63,460 nucleotides of DNA, filler included, from Perkinsus chesapeaki ATCC PRA-425 (GCA_013115145.1; 9 parts of 9 records of this genome joined end to end with filler, not necessarily neighbours in it), one strand, 5' to 3'; shown: positions 22,690 through 36,743, numbered from the whole stretch's first letter. Numbers and translations are program-made. Notes: generated by a model from the sequence alone, not told the origin.

Positions 22690-23366
22690 ATCGTAGTAAT
22701 AATGATAAGAACGGTAGCAATAGGCAAATAACAATAATCACAGTAGCAATGATAATAATGATCATACTCGCAATTACAGTAGCTAGTAATAGCAGTAGTA
22801 GCAATAGTAGTAGCTGCTACTAAGTAATATTCATACCAGTATTTATTCTATCAATTTTTGTTATAGGTTACAGCGACAACTAGAGCAGTAACAACTACTA
22901 CAGCGACAACTAGAGCAGTAACTAGTACAGCACTTATCCAACCTGCTGATTTATCGCTCTTCAGTTCCTATGCACTTTCACGTTTGTTTCTATATTTTAG
23001 CGAGCGATTTTCTTGAGTCCTAGTATTAGTCAATTAATTGGGATTATACAATCATATTATTATGCAAATACCTCTTATTTTTGTTATTCACCATTTCAAA
23101 CTCAGTTCAATATGTGAATAATGTATTGAATATATTAACTTCCGAATTGTTAATTATTATCCTTCTCAAATCAAACTATTACGCTTCTTAAAGTAGTATC
23201 CTCGCTCTAAATTACCGATTCTTAGTGTCAATACTTATTGCCACACTCGTGTAACCCTCCCCCTCGGGCCACAGCACACTCCACAAAACCTAACCTTCCT
23301 AACACTCAACTCGTGAGTATTGCAAGTACACACGCGAGCGATTATTGATTTTTCTTTAGGACAGAC

Positions 23367-24266
23367 ATGCCACCCCGCAAGAATATCAGACCCAAATGCC
23401 CCGTATGTGCTCGTTTTTTGACAAAGACGGGCTTGTGTACTACGTGTATAGCTCGCGATGTAAGTTCTTCTTGTTTCTCGATTTTGCTATTCTCAATTGT
23501 TTTTTGTAGCTTCGTAATGAAATCTCGCAGCGCGAGCAAGCTCAGGCAGTTAGCGGGGTAAACTTATTTGTTTTCCGCTTCCTAATTCAATTCAATTAGT
23601 AGGTATCGGCGGCACCACAATCACAGACTATTCCATTGCCTGTCAGTCAGTCTAACCCGAACGGCACGCCTGTATTAACTTTCGCAAATATCTCTCGTAA
23701 AGTTCTTCTCCGTTCAGATACCTCCAGTTTCTCCACCTCCTTATCCACCTCCACCATCACCTCAACCAGCAACAGCACCCCCTCCAACACTATCGTCTAC
23801 CCCAGTGTTGTCTCAAGTGCGTAGAAAGCCAGCGAGGTGTCCTAGATGTCATCGATTTATGGGAAACGGGGAGTGCCAACGTTGTTTGAGGCGCAGAGTG
23901 AGCTTCATTCCTTCTGTCTCAATTATTACCTACTCCTTTTAGCCACTCGTACTTTCGCCTTCAGCATCCACGCCATCCGTTGCTGGCCCTGAGGTAAGTC
24001 GAAATCAGTTGTTTACTTATTGCATTGTTATCTCAATTCAGAGCGGTCCATGTACCCAGCACGGACAGTCTTCAGCGCATGCTGAGCCAACTAACTCGCC
24101 TCTGCTGTCCCCTCCTTCACCTTCCTCCTCATCCTCCTCATCCTCCTCCTCATCATCATCAAATAGCTCTAAACGGAGTTCAGTGAGCGGTGAAGGGATG
24201 GACCAGGATACGCAAAATTCCTATAATATTCCGCAAGCGACTAATAGTAGTAGTAGTAGTAGTAGC

Positions 24267-24300
<34 letters not shown>

Positions 24301-27300
24301 ACGAAAGTGAAAATTCTGAAAATAATGTTATTCTAGAAAATGCATGTGCCTGTTGTCTCACTCTTGTAGAAACTTTTCTCGTACCTCGTGGTAATATAAG
24401 GGCTAGAGCTTACTCCCAGGTGCAATTGAACTTAGCGCAAATTCGTTTATGTCAGACATGCTTTTTATATGTGTGTGTAGAGAATAATCGGTTAGTCGTG
24501 CCTAACAATAACGCGGGACTTAATCAACTGCAACAGCCCATCGATAATGCGGGAATTAATCAGCAGCAACAACAGCCCATCATCGGCGATGACGATGACG
24601 CGTCTAGCAACGCGTCGTCTGACTCATCATCTTCCTCTGAGGATGATGACGATCAACCAAATCGTCCAAACAATAAATATTTGAAATGGCAATACGGATG
24701 GCGAGGATTTCTAACACATTTCATTCTAAATTCGGCTAATGTGAGTGAACTACGAACACGTTTAGCATATGTACCGCTCGGATATTCCAGCTTATGGGGC
24801 CAGACATTCCTGCAAAGGCTACGTAGCAAGAACAGACTATCTGTCGCGCAGTATCACTTTGTTGCGAATAACATTCAAAGGAAAGTTGTAGATATTTCTG
24901 GAGACATTCAGAAATATAACGAAGCTATAAGCACTGGTAAACTCGCTCAATTAGCATCTGAACTCGACAGAACAGCACTGCCAACAACACGTTGTCCCTT
25001 TGGTTGTACCGAGTATATCGAGAGCGTGGGATCCATCCCTTATAATCATTTCTTACGTTGGGCGTTCCCACATATAACTGCATTTTCCGCAAACGCAGAT
25101 TTGCACCTAAAAGGAGCCCGAACGGACTTTACAAATCCCACCCAGCATTTTGGCCAAACGGTTAGGGCATCTGTACGTGTCACAGTAGAACATGGGCTTG
25201 TCTTGTGTACATGTAGGGACCACGATAGAGGTTCTTCTAAATCATATGTACACGCACCACAGAATCCACACGGCACTTTACCAAACGCCTATAGTGATCG
25301 GCTTGCACCAGTAATATTTGCCCCTAAGCCATTTCGAGGTATGCAAGCAAAGTATGCCTCGCATACATGGCAAATGAGGACGGTGCAAGGGGGTTTCAGC
25401 GGCTTGTCTTCCTTTTCTTTGACAACCAAGCCAAAGTGGAACATCAGATCAAAGCGTCATGCCGAGTTCGAAAAATTGTTCCTGCATGGTAGGCCTGAGT
25501 TAAATTCTTTCGTGAATACCACGTATCGTGACGATCCTGATTTCAAACCAACTCAAGAGTCTTTAGATAAGCTCCCAGTACCTAACCAGGAGAGCCAAGA
25601 TAAGGCTCTGGCAGGGTCGACTTATGTGTCTTTGTCGGAATCGATAAATTTACTACACGGTATGAAACAAAAAATATCGGCGCAGGTAATTGACAATGCT
25701 GAGGAAGCAGCGGACCCAGCAGAAGAAGAACATGCTGATGAGGCTGGTCAGCAGGCACAACAAGAACAGGCAAACGAAGTAGTTCGTCATAATGTTACTT
25801 GGCCGGCCGATTATGCTAAGGCTCAACGCTGTGATGAGTACGGGGATCCACCTCATCCGATCAATACTTTCACAGGAAAGTTTGTTCCCTTAGTTTGGGT
25901 ATTCATCAGGATGTTCTCATTCATCCCTTTAGTATGGCACAATTTTGCGGCCGCCCTACCAATAGCGGAAGAAGATGCGGAGGAGCTTTCCACACTCAAT
26001 GCGTGCAAAGCCTTTTTGTCGACCTTCCTCCCGAGAAGTATGACTTCTACTAAATTCTCTCGTGGTGGTATCCACAGAGGAAATGTGATCAGCGTGCAAG
26101 ACGCTATCAGAGCTAGGGCTACAACCGTTCATGGTCTCATTCCTAACGCGAATGCCGATGCTAGCTGTTTCGACACTTCGATCATTCTTGCACGATTCCT
26201 CAAAACATTACCTAATACACACGTCACTTATGTCGCGTCTAGAGGGACACATATAAATAGTCAGTTCATTGCGCAAACCCTTCATCAAATACCTGACGAT
26301 GAAGCACGACAAAGATGTTCAGTAATCTCAATTTGCACTACCGCTGCAGCTACCACAATAGCCCGTGCAGCTCGTCCAGATATCAAAATACATCTTGAGG
26401 ATTCAGCATGGGAACTTGTAGCTATAATTCGTGCTGACGGCAACGCCAATAGTCCTTGGGATAATCCACAAGGAGGCCAAGCTCGCGACCGTAAATGGGA
26501 TGCTGAGTGCTTTCTCAGAAATTTGGGTGATCATCCGTTGTGGTTCAAGTGCTGTAATAAAACGACTGTTGAAAGATTACCGGCGCCCACGGAAACCAGC
26601 TTGCGCGGCGCTTACACCACGTGGCGAACGCTAGTGTATGTTCGCACATCAGGAGGATACCTAGCTCGTAACAAGCTGCAATATTTACAATTCACGGGCG
26701 GCCAAGGCTGTATGATTTGTCATAACCACGAGACCCCGCTTATTATTACTCCTCCAACAGACTCCAACGCACTGAAGCCTAAATGCTGTTTCAAAAACGG
26801 TGCTGGTGATTTCACTTGTAATCGGGTTGCTAAGTGGTCGTGCCCTTCCGATAACTGCTCTGCTTCACTTTGTCGTCTCCACAGCAAACAGTTATTGGAT
26901 GAAACTAACGTAGATTCACCGATATATCGTATTTTTCCTCGCCCACACCAAAATGTATTACCGGAAGAAATTAACGACATGCAGAACCTCGTCGATGAGG
27001 AGCTACTCGATGATCCATTAGGCAACTTGATCAACGAGCAGCATGAGGAAGATTCAGATAATTCGGTCTTGGGAGATGAGGGCCCTGACGTCATTCTCGA
27101 CGGCGCCTTCGAGGTTGACGAGCCAGTACAAGATGAAGACTTGGATGATAACGAGGCTCACATACCTGAGACTAATTCTGCAGACACACCAGTCATGGTT
27201 GATGGGAGTTCTGGAGTGCCTGGACATTTCTTATTAAACAAGCATTATGCCCTCCTAAATCGGCCAGGTTCCACTAATTACATTTCTGCCAGATCGGGTT

Positions 27301-30300
27301 CTTTCTTTCAGCGCTTAACTTGTAGATTTGCTGGTGCTTCTATACCTATCCTGTACCCTGAGGGAATGTTGTTCCCTAGCATATTCTGGAAATCTCTAAC
27401 TGATGGCACAGTGATCGGGGCACTTCCACACTGCCTTTGGAATACTCCAGTTGCTTGTAAGAAAGCAGGTTTTGCTTCGCTTAACGAACACATTAAGACT
27501 CGTCTCACTGATCCCACACTTCTTACCTCGACCGACCCCCGTGCCATTCAGTTCTATTTCGATGCACTTTTCAACCTTCAGTTATCCACTAGTGACACTC
27601 GTATCATATTATCCCGAGGATGGGAACATTTATCAAGTGACCCATCCACATTCCAAACTATACAAGCCGAAGGGCGTTTACCATTCGGTGAAGCTGATTC
27701 ACGTAAACGCGTTAATGAACTGGCTGCAGAAATCGCGCGCGAACAACCGACGTATTTTTATACACATAGTTGTAATCAATCAGAGCATTTCGGTGTTCGT
27801 CCTATCTTTCAGTGGTTGGAGGACAACTACGCTCTTGCGTCGGAAGAAGATCGCAACGCTGCGGTTCAGTCCGCTCTGGTTCCGATCCTACGAGCTTGGC
27901 AAAGAGCTGGCACTCATTTAATGAAATACATAGAAACTTCTCCTGAGCAGCCCTTGGGTCCAGTGAAAAAAATCTGGTGGAGGTGGGAATTCCAGACGAC
28001 CAGGGGTAACTTGCCTCATATCCATGCTCTCATATGGACTGGCGAAGACCCCAAATCTGTAGAAGTACAGCGTAGGGTAAAGGCCAAACTTAGTCATTGT
28101 TTCTCCGATCTTCAGTCTTTCATCGACGCAGGACTAATCGATAATTACCGGCACGCCATGAAACTTAGAAAGCTTGCAGAAACTATACATGAGCATGATT
28201 GCGCTAAAGGTAACTACCGTTGTTGCAAGAAAAGGGATCGAGACGGGAAGAAAATATGTCGCTTCCCTAAACGACCAGCGACCCATTTATATTCAACCAA
28301 GGAAATTCATGTGCAACATTCAGAAAAGGCACTGGAAATTTTGAAAAATTGCGGTCTTGCGGAACAGCGCAATAATATATTTGGGCACGAGGATACTGTG
28401 CTTACTGCAGAGCTAAGACCGGAAAAGCACATGTATCCTGCCGATTCCCATGCTCGGTTTTCCCCGATGAATGACTGGATTTTCGCAGCCGCCAGGAGTA
28501 GTGACAACCTTCAAATCTGTAGCCCTGCTTTCACTGCCCGCTATCTCGCCAAGTACGCTGCGGGCGAAGAAGAGCGAGCGAAAGCGTTTTTGAAAGCGGG
28601 TAAGGATGCTAATACGCTGAATATTCAGCAGGAAGATATTCGCAATACAAAAGTGACAGGAGCAGCAATCTCAGCTGCAAATGATAAAGCGAAACAGCGA
28701 CAAGACACTGCTATAGAAGGGCGAACTCTCTCACTTACTGAAGCAGTTTGGTGGATTCTAGGATTCCCGTATGTCAGTTTATGCTCGAACTACATACACA
28801 TCAATACTGGCTTTAAACAAGATCGAGGAGGTGTTATAAAACACGAACGAGAGAGAGTTCGCGCAGGTGCAGAGGGAGAAGAAGTTTCAGGGTTTATAGC
28901 TCGTCAAAATTTACATTTCCCACCAGAACGACAGTTTAGTGACCCACAGCGTCTGACGATTCTGGATTGCATGACCAGTAACATAACACCTGACGCTATT
29001 TCCAAGTTTAGTGCCAGGCCTCCAGAGCTAATGTTCATCAACTCACTAGTCGACTATTTTGAGTGCGTAGCCCGTTTGCCAGTCAAGAAATGCCGGGTGC
29101 GTAATGCTGGGGAAGGTTTGAGTGTTCAGGCGGCTCTCCTACGACTTAGCATTCAGCAGTGTCCCTGGATTGACGGTTTCGACAAAGAGATAAAACTTTT
29201 GCCTGCCAAGGTTCGACGGGTCAAAGAACTTGCTGAAGCATACCGAGACGATTTAGCCAACTCTTTGCAACAAAGGCAATTAGTAGCATCTCTTTTACAG
29301 CACATTCTCGAACCGCTACTTTTGGATCAACCATCTCAGGATCTTTTAGATCGCTTCGTTCACCAGTCTAATTCACTACCACATATTGCAGTGTTGTCCA
29401 ATCCATTACCCAGATTTGCAGACAGGTTTCTCATTCATATAGTACTGTCTTTAGGCAAAATCACATCTGAAGTAGAAGTTTTCTCTGTTCCGCATTTGCG
29501 TCTTTCTTTCAAAGCAGTTGGATTGATACAGGACGCGGCCAATCCAACCGAGCAAGAAGTTTANNNNNNNNNNNNNNNNNNNNNNNNNNNNNNNNNNNNN
29601 NNNNNNNNNNNNNNNNNNNNNNNNNNNNNNNNNNNNNNNNNNNNNNNNNNNNNNNNNNNNNTCCGCATTTGCGTCTTTCTTTCAAAGCAGTTGGATTGAT
29701 ACAGGACGCGGCCAATCCAACCGAGCAAGAAGTTTATGATATTCTCCGGGTTTACGTCCTTAAACAGTTGTTGTATATGCCGGGTGGAACGGTATCATTC
29801 GATAAGCACTTAACATACGCTTATGAAGCACTCTATAGCCTGCTTATCGAGGGCGACCTGCAATTCCAAGCTACACCGTTAGTGCTCCGCCATGAACTTA
29901 CACAAGCGGCTACGGAGGCCTTAGTACAACGAACACGCGAGAGTAAGAAGTCGTTCGCAGAGGCTCTACACTTCCTGTCGAATCCAATTCATGACCTTCC
30001 ACCAGTCGAGGACCTCGTAAATTCAACTATGTCAAATCCCTTAGATTGGCAGCCTGAAATACACAGAGGTGACACGCAGTCATTGGAATCGTTCCATGAG
30101 CAGCAAGAAGCCCTCAGCCTTGGCGTTCGAGCTATCGACTATTACGCTTCAGGTCAGAGAGCTTTTGTTCCTGCACCAGTATTATTAGGTCCTCCGGGGA
30201 GTGGAAAATCCTACATCACGGCCCATTGGGGTGCATATGCTTTAGCAAAAGGCTTGAGCACCATCGTGACAAGTACAGCCAGCGAACGAGCAGCTGCTTT

Positions 30301-32086
30301 AGGCGGAGAGCACATACATCTCATTTTCTCCATCCCAGTTTCTCCATCGCTCTCATCTCGATTACTAGCTGAGAGAGCTCTCACCAGGTTAGCACGAGAC
30401 CCTGTGAAGATGCAATGGCTGAAATCTATTCGTGTCTTAGTATTCGAAGAAATAGGAATGGTCGGCGCTGAGATGCTGGACGTTATAAGTAAAATCTTAC
30501 AGTTTTTGCATAACTCATCTCTTCCGTTTGGAGGTTTACTCTTGCTCGGTAGCGGAGATCCAAACCAGCTTCCCCCAATTAAGCAAACTCTTTTGTGGAC
30601 TAGCCCATCTATTATCACAACCATGCGACTATTCATGCTCAAAAAATTCGTACGATCTTCAACAGACCAGCAATTACAGGAAGTTCTCACCTTGTTCCAA
30701 AAACTCCAGCCAACCGAAGCCGATATCCAACGTATTCAATCTTTAATCCAACAGTACTGTCGCTTCCTCCCGAACTGGAATAACGTTCCGGCAGAGGCGC
30801 TTCAGATATTCGGTCATAGAGAGGCGGAGCAAAAAGCTGTTGCGCGACAGCTACAAAGGATTCAACAAGATCCAACTATTGCCAAGGTGGTTATTGTCTC
30901 TGTCGACCAGTACACTCTGGATGGTGGACACGTTTGGGTACCGGTAAACCAGCCTAGAATTACTAGCAAAATGAACCGTAAACTCCAGGCTCCGTCTAGC
31001 ATAACGCTATTCGNNNNNNNNNNNNNNNNNNNNNNNNNNNNNNNNNNNNNNNNNNNNNNNNNNNNNNNNNNNNNNNNNNNNNNNNNNNNNNNNNNNNNNN
31101 NNNNNNNNNNNATTATGAGGTTCACTTGCAACGACAATCCTAGCAGAAGGGCGTTCCACCAGAGCCAGCTGTGCGTAGTTAAAACATTGCCAGTTGACGA
31201 GGGTAGTTTCATGGTATGGGTAGCTCCGCCGGGGAAACGCACAATACCAATAAACGACCAGCAATTCATCGATGAGGGCTGGAAAGAATTGTCAGTATCT
31301 AAGATCTTCACCATCCCATACCGATTAGAGAGTCACATGATGGTGAGAAGAGAACAATACCCCATCAGACATTATATCGCTGCTACTATTCATAAAGTAA
31401 TGGGTGATACCCTTGGCATGATCGCTACCCAAATTTCAGATAAGAAATCCGCGTACAAATTGTGGCTGAAATCACAACTCTATGTTATAATATCCAGGGT
31501 ACGCGCAATGTCTCATATATATTTCATTGGGGATCTGGGCGAAACCATGAGTGCTATTAGGAATTTACTAGCACAATACACTCAGTGGGAAGGCTACGTT
31601 CGTCATGTGGTTGAGGTTTTAACATCCGCAGGAATGGTGGCAGCACCACCCGTTATATATTTCAATACACGCCCGTTCCGTTCCAGGGATATTCCAATTC
31701 CGGACGATGAAGCTGGCTATGTGTACATCGTTGTTTCAACCAAAAATACAGGGATCTCCTACATTGGGCAAACGAGTCATCTTAGGACACGAATCAACCA
31801 GCATAACGGGATTTCCTCAGCTGGTGGTGCGAATTTCACGGCCAAGGCTCATTTCCGGCCTTGGGGGCTGCTAGCGTATATTGTGGGTTTTGAATTATAC
31901 ATGGACAATGCCGCAAATCGTCAAAGGCGTGAACATGTTGAGCATACCTGGGATTATGTATCAAGAAACAGACATAACGGCCATCCTACTCCTTTACAAA
32001 TTTTGGACGATTGGACCTATGTTTTCGACAATATATTACGCCAACAATTTCCAGATCTCGTCATGGTTCAATGCGGGGATCTCTGA
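23367..32086 (+). CDS. Giant RepHel protein (~2,770 aa): Zn-finger/low-complexity N-terminus, HUH Rep, PIF1 helicase, C-terminal SLX1-like GIY-YIG nuclease
   Basis: Exons 23367-23459, 23510-23557, 23603-23671, 23718-23897, 23943-23993, 24042-end, all phase 0. Rep: YFYTHSCN (27753), WEFQTTRGNLPHIHALIW (~27984-28037), YLAKY (28542). Helicase: GPPGSGKS (30188), FEEIGM, GDPNQLPP, ATIHKVMG, QLYVIISRV. Nuclease: GYVYIVV..YIGQT..RINQHNG..RPW (31715 on). Confidence 0.88.
24122..24300 (+). repeat. Two poly-Ser microsatellites, (TCC/TCA)n and (AGT)n, inside the RepHel N-terminus
   Basis: tcctcctcatcc.. at ~24122-24160 and agtagtagt.. at ~24245-24300. Confidence 0.9.
29489..29736. other. Assembly artefact: 75-bp overlap duplicated either side of an N-gap
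   Basis: 29489-29563 is identical to 29662-29736, flanking Ns at 29564-29661. Collapsing it fuses the two track ORFs in frame (..PHLRLSFKAVGLIQDAANPTEQEVYDILRVY..). Confidence 0.95.
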
Positions 32087-33555
32087 GTCCATCGGAGATC
32101 TCAGCGACACTTTATTATTCTCGCAGTTACTTAGTTATTATTTTAATTCAATTTTTAACCTTCCCCTTGTACATACGGCACGACTAACTCATTTCTCTAA
32201 ATCAAACTAAATTTTTATTATCATTATTTTATATAGCACACTGTAAATGAAGCATGTCTGCGTAAAGATGCGCTGCTACCGTCCCGTTGTAGTATCCCTT
32301 TGCTGGAGAAACAACAGGATGGGCCCTTGAAGTCGTCCTCGGCTCGTGAGGTTCCTACCCCGAAGGGTTACTCACAATGAGCATTTTGTATTCTCCAACG
32401 ACTTCATAGGGTGCTACCTGGTGAGGATGCTCTGCAACCCTTCGGGGTCTATTCGTCTCAATTAGTGACGAGTAGAGCATCTTTCCGCGTATTTCTTATC
32501 TACTGAACTATAGCACTGTACTGGGCTACTTTCTCTTAATTAGACTTCTTGTAAATAATTTAATTTTCTGTTATTAGTTTTAGGTAATTGCATTGACTGT
32601 AATTTGAAGGTAAATGTTTTATTTTTTCATGAGTCAGAGCTAGTTGAATCGGCTGCAGTTCAATCAAGTGATCAATAAGCATGAATATTTGTAACATGTA
32701 CCATTCCATACTGTATATATCTCATATTACTATACCATGTGGTTCACGTTAATTTCTCCCTTTTTAATAAAGTCTGTTATATGTTGTACCATCTTGTGAT
32801 TACTCTGCTCTGAGAACTTTATGTTGCTTTGCTGTGCACTTTTCAGTAAGCCTGGTGCACTGCAATACCGTGTTGATGAGGTACACTTCGAGTCTTAGAG
32901 ATGAAGCTTGTGGTACCGCTCCTTGGACCAATAGTGTTTCTGTAGTTGGGCACAGTCCTTGGTTGCGGAAGTGAATTCTGCTAGGAGGAGTGAAATCTTA
33001 CAACATTGGTTTTGCTTTCATTGGGCGAACTGTTTTGTAAACAGTATTAGCATAGAATTGCTGTATCGTTCCACATCACTCACCAAACTCTTCAATCACA
33101 GACTTACCCTCACTCTCTCTTCTCACGTAAGCAACTGTTACGTTGCGGAGGCCAGGGGCCCCATAGAATGGGGACGGCCGAAGCTCTTACATCACTGAAC
33201 TCATGCTCCCTATGACATAATTGCTACTTTCTTACTAAAATCTCTTGCGTTGCTCTTATGAACAAGCTAATTCGGTCCCAAAGTTCCTAACAGATTGAGT
33301 TTGTTGCCTATAGTTGGCAATTCTTCTCTCTCCGTTCTATCCCCATCGTTGGCTGCGCCGAGCTGCTAATTGCCCACCACCTTATCATAACTTGAACTAT
33401 CAGTAAAGTAAGCATTTGTACCAACATAATTAATTCACTATCACAAACGTAGTGATCCGGAGTTTCGCTACGAAAAGTGTAACTAATTTCAATACTTGTT
33501 ATAGTATTACTGTGCTAAAATCTTAAGATGAAGCGCTTCAACGATTTCTTGTCAG

Positions 33556-35207
33556 ATGCCCATTCTTTCCGATAAAGACCTTTTGGCTTTAACGCAAGCC
33601 CGAGCTATGCGGCGCATAGGTCTCCATGAAGTCCCAATAGAAGGGACCGGTAAGATAAGCACTCACGATTCTACTAAAAAAGCCGTACTCTATGCCCGGC
33701 TCTTACATATAAAATGTGGAACAGCTAATAAACGTGTGACAATCAATCGATCACGTTATGTCCCTGGCGGTGGTGATGGTGGTGCCCCGAAACGCTACTC
33801 CAATGAAGCGGTTTATGATAAATATATGTTATTTATAGATCTTAGTACATTCGAGCCTTTTGCGCTCATTTCCCGAGATTCGGGTATTTCGTCTTACCTT
33901 TTAAAAGTTGAGAATCTCCGAATAGGAGATAAGATATTGTTAACCGAGCCAAGCGGCTGTGGAGTTTTATCGCGAGATCATACACGACTGATAAGCACGG
34001 AGGATAGGATATTGCCAAACCCTTCGCAAGACGTGCCCAGAAACTTACCATTGGAGAGCTCTACGAGATATGGGTACGGATTATATCAAGGGTCCAAGAT
34101 AGAAGCTTTACGATGCGGAGTGGTTTCGGACATTTGTAATGGCTACTTATGTGATTCGATATATAATACTGGTCGCTGTCCATGTGTTCGAAACCCTTCC
34201 CATCCGAACTGGGTTGTGAGTTTGGTTGTTGTGCTGGACGACCTTGATATTGAGCTCGCACTCACGAGTAATCAATTAACCCAGATGTTCGCTACAAATA
34301 ACATTCGGAAGGTATACCACCCTACCTGTGCAAGTCCACGATTTTTGCTTTTTAGCTATCCGTGGAATCCGAGAAGGTTGAGCCGCTGTCTGTCTCTAAC
34401 GTAGTGGATACTATTATAGAGTACGTAAATGATAGAGGAGCTTGGACCGCCGTTATATGGTCCAAAGCATCCCGTGGTGAGGGTGAAGCGAATGCGGTTG
34501 TTAAACCAGCCAAGTACCATCTAGTGCAACTATACCCAACTAACTTATCTGCAGCGGAATGGGAGGCGATCGAAGGGATGAAGTAAGTTCATTTTACACA
34601 TTACTACTATTGGCGATACGACGATTGACGATACGCTGTGGATGTTGCCCATCTTGCTCGCCATATGCAGCTGATGCTTATTGTTTTGCATGTGCCTTAC
34701 TTATTTACATAATATTAATTTCAGATACAACGGTGAGCCGAATAACGAACAACAGCCCGCCAACAATGCTGGCAACCCTCCCGTCAACAATGCTGCCCAA
34801 CAACCCGCTAACAATGCTGCAATGGGTGGAAATAATGGTGCCGCCGGGAATGCTGTGCAAGGGGCAAATAATGGTAGGTTATAGTATTTGAGGGTCCATT
34901 CCCATAAATAGCTTTTCAGCCGGTCTAGCCGGTGTTGGCAATGCTGCAGCCGCTCCTAATTTAGGTCAACTCCCGAATAATGGTAAGATGCTTTTTGGTA
35001 AGTGAGACAACATTGTGTCCCGTAGGTGCAGGGCACGGCGCTAATCAACTCGCGGGAAACGGGAATAATGCGCAAGTAAGATTGTTTGTTTAAAAAAATA
35101 TCCGGTGAATATTACTCACCTTTTAGCCACCACACGGAGCTAACTTAAATAATGGTGGTAATGATAATAACGGTGGCGGGGACAATGTAAAAGTAAGCAC
35201 ACAGTGA
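33556..35207 (+). CDS. Helitron-associated spliced gene: beta-rich Cys-cluster domain (possible OB-fold ssDNA-binding protein) with an Asn/Gly/Ala-rich tail
   Basis: Phase-consistent introns join ..NNIRK^LSVESEK..AIEGMK^YNGEPNN..GANN^AGLAGVG..PNN^GAGHG..NAQ^PPHGANLNNGG. Contains CNGYLCD..RCPC. The OB-fold call is inference. Confidence 0.7.
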
Positions 35208-36743
35208 TCTTGAGGGATATTGGGGTCTTGCTCAGGATGAACACTAACAGTGCTGATGAGAAGAGACGCTCTTCAAGAGAGAGAGAGCGAGAGTAATACG
35301 AGATGGTTTCATTTTTCCGTACAAAAAACCCCCCCAAAAACCATTTCCCAGCTCGTGTTGAGTTCAGTGAAAATCAATTAGCTGCAGAGTCGTTTCAGCA
35401 TACCCCAGTCAGGTGAACAAACTCGTGTATTAGTAGAAGGCATTTATGAGCAAGTCTTTCAACAAAACGACTGTATACTCCAGATTATTACGTTCTTTGT
35501 TTTTCATTAGTTCGCGAGATGAATGGTGGACTCATTGGACTCAATGTGTTTCATGTTTGTCTGATTCGAGGTGCAACAATGTTACCGTTTCCCTCCGAAT
35601 ATCTTATCTAACGACGTTAGACTAACGTAATCATGCGCATATAACTAGTACCAACAGTTTATCACTACAGGCCACCGTTTTCGAATCTGTATATCTGGCC
35701 CACCGCCTAATTCCCTCGCAGCTAAAGGCCATGATGGCCTGGCCATCGGTAACCATGCGCTCCTTATCCTGTACCCTATGCGTATTACTAGCTGTGTACT
35801 CGCTCTCTCAGTGCCATGGCGTTGGTAAGGGAATGATCGAAGACGGAACAACCTACTACGTACGTATAAATCGCTGCAAGTTGTATCTTATGACCTAAGA
35901 ATCAGGGTAATATAATATGTGATTGTGGATACTTGAGCACAAACATTTAGACTACAATCACATCTCTCACACAGATGGTAGAATTAACCAAACACGTCTG
36001 AAAAATATAACTTCTCGAACTCGTCGAGATCTCTGAAAATCTGATAGGCTCGCGGTAAAACCACTTGTAATCAGGTAGTCTTTGATACTAGCTTAGCGTT
36101 CATAGATTACTGGAAATCAACTCTTGACAGGTTGCTTCAATGGGTATTCATTTCCCCTCCAACGTGCAGCACAGTAGACCGCTTCGTCTAAATATCACGT
36201 GGCCTTTGAGGGTTCTCTTTTCGATGACTATGTCTTATATCTAGCGTGCACTGGAAATTTTAGTAGGTTTTGCTGCCCGTTGTTATCACACGATTCACTC
36301 GTGCTTGAAGTATTCAAAATTGGTATTGCCAATTACTCTCATCAGGGTTTATTACTCTCTTCCAAGGGCAAGTTGTGACAAACCTACAAAAAGATCACTT
36401 TCCCTGTTTCATAATTGTCTTGTATATTGATTATATTCGTTATATTGACCAACTCGCAGAATTTCACACTAATAAAACCACCATTCTTCGTTTACGACAC
36501 GTCTATCTATTGTTCAAGAACAATGTGCCTGAACAAGTATTTCAGCTATATTCAGTATTCATAGTCTATTAAAACATTGAGTATATTCCGACAGGGAATA
36601 AATAATTAATCATAAATTAGACTTGTTCATATTTTCTAGTGTTTAATAGAGTATATATTAGCTAACTACCTCTCTATAGTTCCAAAAGTTTGATTGCCAG
36701 GTTACTCGCTTAACTCATCGTATTCAAGCGCCTCTATTCAGAT

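Follow-up and report, generated by a model that had tools for sequence, protein, structure and literature searches.

A Rep-helicase protein with a C-terminal SLX1-like GIY-YIG nuclease, encoded by a probable Helitron-like element of Perkinsus chesapeaki

We analysed a stretch of 63,460 nucleotides (the window), in which nine records of the Perkinsus chesapeaki ATCC PRA-425 genome (GCA_013115145.1) are joined with filler, and found a very long open reading frame (ORF1) on its plus strand. As read from the translation, ORF1 encodes a single polypeptide of ~2550-2600 residues comprising two conserved N-terminal modules, an HUH/two-tyrosine Rep domain, a PIF1-like 5'-3' helicase, a linker and an SLX1-type GIY-YIG nuclease. 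In this Perkinsus-like alveolate genome, ORF1 is probably the principal gene of a mobile element of the Helitron-like, rolling-circle type. What is new here is that an SLX1-type nuclease is lineage-defining in Helitron-like elements, a combination with one brief published precedent. The region examined around ORF1 covers positions 22690-36743. ORF1 is made up of the following parts, given in window coordinates together with the evidence for each.

24009-29563, plus strand: first part of ORF1 with a low-complexity, Ser-rich N-terminus, modules A and B and Rep (open frame; first ATG at 24198)
24876-25658, plus strand: conserved module A, consensus CP.GC ... TC..H ... TYQM (~45-50 family proteins matched; alignment A9)
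26559-27008, plus strand: conserved Cys-rich module B, CMICHNH...CRLH (~35-43 family proteins matched)
27309-28688, plus strand: Rep (HUH-Y2) nuclease domain (Helitron_like_N; family alignment A5; profile match to Helraiser, 7LCC)
29564-29736, no strand: assembly gap 1, an artefact of 98 N and a duplicated 75-nt contig overlap, not real sequence (exact repeat; contigs of three runs)
29737-31013, plus strand: N-terminal half of the helicase (Pfam PIF1; PIF1 chains in the PDB)
31014-31111, no strand: assembly gap 2, true content 8 nt in frame (V-G-A) in two runs (contigs and relatives)
31112-31666, plus strand: C-terminal half of the helicase (2B/SH3-like region, motifs V-VI)
31667-32083, plus strand: conserved linker and SLX1-like GIY-YIG nuclease domain (Pfam; conservation in 155 domains; AlphaFold2; Foldseek)
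32084-32086, plus strand: stop codon TGA

All sequence strings quoted in a preliminary description of this DNA were found in one common frame on translation of the plus strand. Its central claim, a GIY-YIG domain continuing in the same frame after PIF1 motif VI, is confirmed by the motif strings, the position of the stop codon and a scan of the C-terminal domain with Pfam GIY-YIG (PF01541; 34.3 bits against a curated cut-off of 22.6, E = 3e-8). The domain follows ~75 residues past motif VI. Its signature motifs are GYVYIV (31715-31732), SYIGQT (31757-31774) and RTRINQHN (31784-31807), and the catalytic Glu is part of EHVEHTW (31931-31951). Among 155 distinct domains of the family, the Tyr of GIY is conserved in 99%, the Tyr and Gly of YIG in 95% and 99%, the Arg in 94%, the His in 99%, the Asn in 92% and the catalytic Glu in 92%. 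The domain in the window has all of these catalytic residues (Y, Y, G, R, H, N, E); it is catalytically complete and looks active. The linker ahead of the nuclease (P-F-R-.-.-D-.-.-L-P) is also conserved in the family. For a measure of selection, we compared ORF1 with L004 and L005, two paralogous units from one sample that both carry ORF1 and a downstream ORF2 (see below). Synonymous sites are saturated in these comparisons (proportion of synonymous differences, pS, 0.82-0.91). The ratio of non-synonymous to synonymous differences (pN/pS) reaches 0.29-0.39 in the nuclease; for Rep and helicase it is lower, at 0.19-0.27. Judged by these ratios, the nuclease is under purifying selection.

The preliminary description had also called the nuclease specifically SLX1-like, and the rankings against PDB sequences, PDB structures and Swiss-Prot models all bear this out. 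SLX1 is the catalytic subunit of the structure-specific endonuclease SLX1-SLX4, and At-HIGLE is its Arabidopsis homolog. When the nuclease of the window was searched against the PDB sequences, the significant matches were SLX1 chains only (E = 1.2e-6 to 3e-4). A profile of 44 sequences (A4) reached SLX1 with E-values of 1e-15 to 2e-12, in an alignment that extends through the catalytic Glu; further matches of this profile were bacterial UPF0213 proteins (4e-6 and 1e-4) and T4 EndoII (0.08). The AlphaFold2 model of the nuclease domain has a predicted local distance difference test (pLDDT) score of 93.7. In a Foldseek search of the PDB with this model the top 11 hits were SLX1 chains or At-HIGLE (E = 1e-6 to 7e-4, TM 0.58-0.69), with UvrC (E ~0.4) and I-TevI (E = 2.8) far behind. 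Among the Swiss-Prot models the top 30 hits were all SLX1, from fungi, trypanosomes, Giardia and a mosquito. SLX1 and At-HIGLE are thus the best and essentially the only significant match of the nuclease core (TM 0.58-0.72 overall), which is SLX1-like both by sequence and by predicted fold.

The motifs GIY, YIG, R..HN, RPW, GF and FE..W are common to SLX1 and the ORF1 nuclease. The protein ends ~45 residues beyond the motif of the catalytic Glu, with a tail of two helices and a strand in the confident AlphaFold2 model. According to sequence and model this tail has no Cys/His cluster, and the RING/PHD-type zinc finger found at the C-terminus of SLX1 is absent. Unlike SLX1, the ORF1 nuclease has hence no SLX4-binding module and is covalently tied to a helicase. 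With ~20-25% identity and no RING finger, it is by these measures not an SLX1 ortholog.

The Rep domain contains motif I (FYTHSCN, 27756-27776), the HUH motif (HIHALIW, 28017-28037) and the two-tyrosine motif (YLAKYAAG, 28542-28565). In an alignment of 46 Rep regions of the family (A5) neither His of HUH nor the first Tyr ever varies, and conservation is at least 90% for both the Lys and the second Tyr of YxxKY. The Pfam model Helitron_like_N was matched by 31 of the 46 regions (E <= 0.1; best 1.4e-8), and the relative P0165 scored 29.7 bits. When the A5 profile was run against all PDB sequences, the sole match was the Helraiser transposase (7LCC, E = 0.0034), with colinear blocks at motif I (F.T.TCN), at HUH (EFQ..G.LPH.H) and at the tyrosine motif (YL.KY). 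We classify the Rep of ORF1, on the strength of these motifs and profiles, as Helitron-type but remote.

C-terminal to Rep, and in the same protein once the artefact at gap 1 is collapsed, follows a superfamily 1B (SF1B) helicase of the PIF1 family. The middle part of ORF1 matches Pfam PIF1 with E = 4e-11, and the helicase motifs include a Walker A sequence (GPPGSGKS, 30188-30211), LVFEEIGM (30437-30460), GDPNQLPP (30554-30577) and motif VI (QLYVIISRV, 31475-31501). Among PDB sequences the best E-values were 7e-10 for PIF1 chains and 6.7e-6 for the Helraiser helicase; the ORF1 helicase is not closer to Helraiser than to cellular PIF1. At 30683-30990 a contig of 683 nt matches at both ends and is diverged in between, at a depth of ~1/4 to <1/2 of the main contig. 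It indicates a diverged helicase paralog in the same genome.

The frame is listed as two assembled ORFs (24009-29699 and 29669-32086) because of the N gap 1. The 75 nt preceding this gap (positions 29489-29563 of the window; the gap itself spans 29564-29661) are an exact repeat of the following 29662-29736, and in contigs of three public DNA runs, which come from two samples, position 29488 is followed directly by 29662. Once the duplicate is collapsed the frame is kept (..NPTEQEV-YDILR..). For gap 2, contigs of two runs (sample S2) have just 8 letters between 31013 and 31112, which together with the preceding g make the codons V-G-A in frame. In the relative L004 the spacing fits only if the gap holds exactly 8 nt, and four Perkinsus relatives align without gaps with three residues at this place, either IGA or VGA. 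The resolved ORF1 has 7812 nt or 2604 codons, 2541 of them from the first ATG. The relative P0160 has a length of 2561 residues, and its start (position 762 of L004) aligns near 24225. From 31112 to 32400 the contigs of all three runs, from both samples, show zero differences from the window. No joint, variant or stop between helicase and nuclease was seen in this stretch in any of the three runs. Imperfect trinucleotide and 15-nt repeats (TAG/AGT-rich and TCC-rich) occur at 22729-22928 and 24117-24307; those within ORF1 encode long Ser runs, and one public contig over the locus was computed to end at ~24272, within the Ser-coding repeats.

To determine how widespread this layout is, we searched 1.84 billion representative proteins with HMMER, using the last 324 residues of ORF1 (the helicase C-terminus and the nuclease). 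The search matched 907 representative clusters, and in 121 the E-value was 1e-30 or lower. The best matches mostly run from the helicase through into the nuclease, and many belong to proteins of ~2200-2900 residues that are aligned at their extreme C-terminus. PIF1 and GIY-YIG were confirmed by Pfam in relatives, and hundreds of independent sequences have the same helicase-nuclease junction. A homolog of the nuclease domain is present in 174 of 187 family proteins, the latter being those fetched up to the time of the domain count, and the Rep region is common to every long family protein. A search that started from the Rep region alone returned proteins of 25-73% identity whose precomputed domains were again PIF1 and GIY-YIG. 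A profile search with the Rep alignment found in-clade fragments only, and a word-based search with the C-terminal part three Perkinsus proteins only.

Apart from sequences of ENA, JGI or Logan, the relatives belong to Perkinsus olseni, with identities of up to 73-88% and at least eight different fragments of family proteins, and to P. chesapeaki. Identity to close relatives is 58-82%. For several relatives the sole JGI label is 'predicted GIY-YIG superfamily endonuclease'. Many family proteins, of 2200-3000 residues, stem from Perkinsus spp. and metagenomes, and the architecture recurs in numerous environmental contigs that look eukaryote-like. As a lead only, the neighbours found with a protein language model include clusters recorded from diatoms and chordates. 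On these sequence comparisons the Rep-PIF1-GIY-YIG layout is a large, deep and barely described family and not a one-off. Rep, helicase and GIY-YIG co-occur down to ~25% identity in Rep, so that the fusion marks a lineage. The distinct lineage proposed in the preliminary description is upheld in this sense, though the layout is not unique to the window.

Modules A and B correspond to ORF1 residues ~290-550 and ~850-1000 and are kept family-wide. No Pfam model matched either of them (24 members were scanned for module A). Language-model similarity of module A to clusters of DUF6570 was weak (scores of 0.66-0.69) and serves as a lead only.

Among the known systems, the Helraiser transposase (a member of the HLE1 group) has motif I, HUH and YxxKY in colinear order and likewise a PIF1-family helicase after Rep. 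Elements of HLE1 start with 5'-TC, finish with a 3' hairpin and CTRR and insert between A and T, whereas those of HLE2 have short terminal inverted repeats and insert between T and T. The relation is very distant, as the profile E-value given above illustrates, and ORF1 differs by its two extra conserved N-terminal modules, by ~1000 additional residues and by the C-terminal nuclease. A downstream accessory ORF resembling a single-strand DNA-binding protein is possibly common to ORF1 and canonical Helitrons. In Helentrons (HLE2), too, the Rep-helicase (RepHel) transposase continues beyond the helicase into an additional endonuclease. Their nuclease has the Exo_endo_phos/apurinic-apyrimidinic (AP) endonuclease fold, whereas the fold is GIY-YIG (SLX1-like) here. 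No match to Exo_endo_phos (PF03372) was found in the window or its relatives, which have GIY-YIG at that position instead. Some relatives carry an N-terminal cysteine protease as well: a Ulp1 domain (PF02902) was found in P0171 and a weak match to OTU (E = 0.04) in P0165. This extra protease recalls the OTU domain of Helentrons.

The published precedent is HelenSM92, a Helentron-like family of Sphagnum magellanicum, for which the HELIANO study (Nucleic Acids Research 2024, PMC11417382) reported a "captured" GIY-YIG domain. The preliminary description had named mainly the AP endonuclease of Helentrons as a C-terminal fusion, and no GIY-YIG fusion among the standard variants. Among the publications that we searched, the HELIANO paper (PMC11417382) was the sole one to link a RepHel element with GIY-YIG, and nothing relevant paired Helitrons with SLX1 or with Perkinsus. 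HelenSM92, compared here by description only, is likewise a RepHel element with GIY-YIG; it is one land-plant HLE2 family with a captured domain, short terminal inverted repeats and a T-T target. In the present family, by contrast, the domain is lineage-wide, of SLX1 type and found in an alveolate. Penelope-like retroelements also encode a C-terminal GIY-YIG domain, but theirs is attached to a reverse transcriptase and falls into another subgroup of the GIY-YIG nucleases. In these retroelements the domain ends the main enzyme and serves to nick the target (PMC11662393, PMC6431247).

ORF1 is accompanied by the following conserved or candidate features.

23367-23561, plus strand: small ORF or possible 5' exon with a zinc-ribbon-like CxxC...CxxC motif (match to L005 2905-2994)
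23805-23942, plus strand: second copy of the same Cys motif, RKPARCPRCHRF...C..C (translations)
32331-32495, no strand: conserved structured block in the spacer between ORF1 and ORF2 (conservation in L004 and L005; fold z-score)
33556-34404, plus strand: ORF2, 282 residues, conserved downstream partner of ORF1 (homologs in L004 and L005)
34362-34586, plus strand: small ORF overlapping the end of ORF2 (conserved in L004 and L005)

An ORF of the ORF2 type lies ~1.5-2 kb downstream of ORF1 in the window, in L004 and in L005. The homologs occupy the same relative place, share a Cys motif and are 31-36% identical. ORF2 gave no match in Pfam and no profile match in the PDB, and an AlphaFold2 model built from three sequences was unusable (pLDDT 35). 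Its language-model features, used as a lead only, point uniformly to single-strand binders of the oligonucleotide/oligosaccharide-binding (OB) fold, with POT1, CDC24_OB (CDC24/RPA-like), CTC1 and MEIOB at 0.90-0.92. Judged from these features alone, ORF2 is possibly an OB-fold protein that binds single-stranded DNA. The small ORF at its end is 28-31% identical to L004 10799-11032 and L005 14031-14228 and is probably a continuation or second exon of ORF2.

The structured block is ~70% identical to L004 8826-8979 and L005 11321-11476, in a spacer that is otherwise not alignable next to it. Two 12-nt arms (32358-32369 and 32436-32447; the motif count was compared with that in shuffled sequences) make up a perfect inverted repeat within the block, which folds better than shuffled sequences (DNA fold z-score of -3.2). 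Its hairpins are closed by CGAA and TTCG loops, and short, deeper contigs of the same genome match its core (32342-32383). A search of Rfam with the piece gave no family, only a chance-level match to MIR529 (E = 0.5). An end signal, an origin, a promoter and an RNA are candidate roles for the block.

Upstream of ORF1, the peptide encoded by 23367-23561 is 46.7% identical over 30 residues (E = 4e-6) to the one at L005 2905-2994, which also precedes ORF1 there; it matches DZR_2 weakly (E = 0.027). The second copy of the Cys motif had no significant match in the relatives. These CxxC...CxxC peptides may be 5' exons or a small zinc-ribbon ORF. Since the upstream peptide, ORF2 and the small ORF are conserved, the conserved unit spans at least 23367-34586; from the comparison of sequences, ORF2 and the structured spacer block belong to the unit in the Perkinsus clade.

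Signs of mobility come from a distant member of the family, P0003 (39% identity in the C-terminal part), which one ENA assembly contains on three or more long contigs. Its copies form units of ~26 kb (L001 1-17086, L002 565-26508 and L003 686-26560) that are 98-99% identical over ~26 kb and each abut diverged copies head-to-tail. The family is therefore multicopy, as shown for that one distant member. Where these units abut diverged copies, their 3' boundary is at a CTAG or 5 nt after it, which makes it ambiguous. The unit junction reads ...CGCTAGGTGGT then CGGGGCGC..., with a GC-rich near-palindrome just inside the 5' side.

A number of results weigh against ORF1 being the main gene of a Helitron-like mobile element. 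The Rep of the window itself scored 25.3-27.7 bits with Helitron_like_N (E = 2e-5 to 3.8e-6), below the gathering cut-off of 28.9, and in a phmmer search of the PDB sequences with this region alone no match was obtained and Helraiser was not reached. In scans of six N-terminal regions and of 24 copies of module A, Pfam gave no match to DUF6570 (PF20209) at E <= 1; this domain was proposed by HELIANO as a marker of HLE2, the Helentron-like group (PMC11417382). Among the RNA runs listed, none holds ORF1. In the third run (sample S1) a contig joins 31008 to 31112 with 13 nt fewer, between two ATT triplets, and this deletion shifts the frame of ORF1 into an immediate TGA. Barring a contig error, the ORF1 copy is therefore intact in one sample and broken or heterozygous in the other, and maybe it is decaying or polymorphic. 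Gap 2 of the assembly coincides exactly with the site of the deletion, which may be heterozygous or strain-polymorphic. As to the nuclease, SLX1 depends for its full activity on SLX4, bound via the RING domain that the ORF1 nuclease lacks, and the role given to this nuclease below is drawn purely by analogy.

Four other explanations of the locus were weighed. The first takes Rep-PIF1-GIY-YIG for the replication or integration module of a larger, possibly virus-like or giant element and not for part of a compact Helitron. The distant multicopy relative of ~26 kb, with several other ORFs, is in line with this, as are the extent of the Perkinsus unit (11 kb or more, including ORF2 and non-coding DNA that is conserved) and the Ulp1- or OTU-like protease domains of some members. 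However, neither the window nor L001-L005 showed a gene for a capsid, a polymerase or packaging, and large Helitrons with captured genes are well known (PMC6431247). We regard this explanation as rather unlikely.

Unlikely, too, is a domesticated host gene, that is, a RepHel-GIY-YIG protein (with ORF2) that has been co-opted or survives as a relic at a single-copy locus of this genome. In the contigs of the DNA runs the sole other matching contig is a diverged paralog and there is no second near-identical copy, nor is any of the close relatives near-identical. Strong purifying selection and saturated synonymous sites fit long-lived genes and transposon lineages equally. Domestication is at odds, on the other hand, with the two paralogous units L004 and L005 in one sample, with the many different fragments in P. 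olseni and with the clearly multicopy state of the distant family, and a frameshifting deletion, as found in one sample, is what dispensable copies typically show.

Helitrons often capture fragments of host genes, and if one Helitron family had recently picked up part of a host SLX1, this would correspond to the way in which HELIANO describes the Sphagnum case (PMC11417382). Such a recent capture is very improbable for the present family: even in relatives with a Rep of only 25-40% identity the domain holds the same position and follows a conserved linker, and it is far from the SLX1 structures in identity, without their RING finger and under selection. An assembly chimera or mis-join of a helicase gene with an unrelated nuclease gene, suggested by the two N gaps inside the ORF, is refuted by the run contigs, which bridge both gaps and agree across the junction, and by the HMMER matches of the whole library, which repeat that junction.

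Based on the domain order and the comparison with known elements, we propose the following mechanism for the Helitron-like element. As in Helraiser, Rep would nick and join the transposed strand while the helicase unwinds the DNA. The GIY-YIG domain would supply a second DNA cut that is independent of Rep. It occupies the position of the AP endonuclease in Helentrons, for which nicking of the target or of the second strand has been proposed. Most likely, GIY-YIG would nick the target or the non-transferred strand, or else trim a flap or branch left by strand displacement, and this cut would let integration or repair synthesis proceed. ORF2 could coat the displaced single strand, like the RPA-like genes that other Helitrons carry. 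The preliminary description had seen in the nuclease the element's own resolvase for branched or flap intermediates. That idea, one of the options above, was pure conjecture, and the part of SLX1 that binds SLX4 is missing; by analogy, nicking of the target or second strand is at least as likely.

Tentatively, and with a good chance of being wrong, the Rep-PIF1-GIY-YIG proteins might form a third, ancient major group of eukaryotic rolling-circle elements outside HLE1 and HLE2. Such a group would have its own N-terminal modules and an SLX1-type nuclease that cuts double-stranded or branched DNA independently of Rep, with some members being head-to-tail giants of 26 kb. The family would gain in interest if phylogeny did give a separate major group.

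Target opening and the handling of the second strand are unsettled questions in Helitrons, and the AP endonuclease of Helentrons has long hinted at help from an extra nuclease. A second, structurally unrelated nuclease at the same position, intact across a deep family, would be a natural convergent experiment that opens this step to direct tests, and its kinship with SLX1 suggests flaps, forks and nicked junctions as candidate substrates. Current catalogues of Helitrons, like the Pfam models, largely miss a lineage that is widespread in protists and environmental sequences. Most members seen here are metagenomic ORFs or carry no label beyond 'GIY-YIG endonuclease' or 'PIF1 helicase'.

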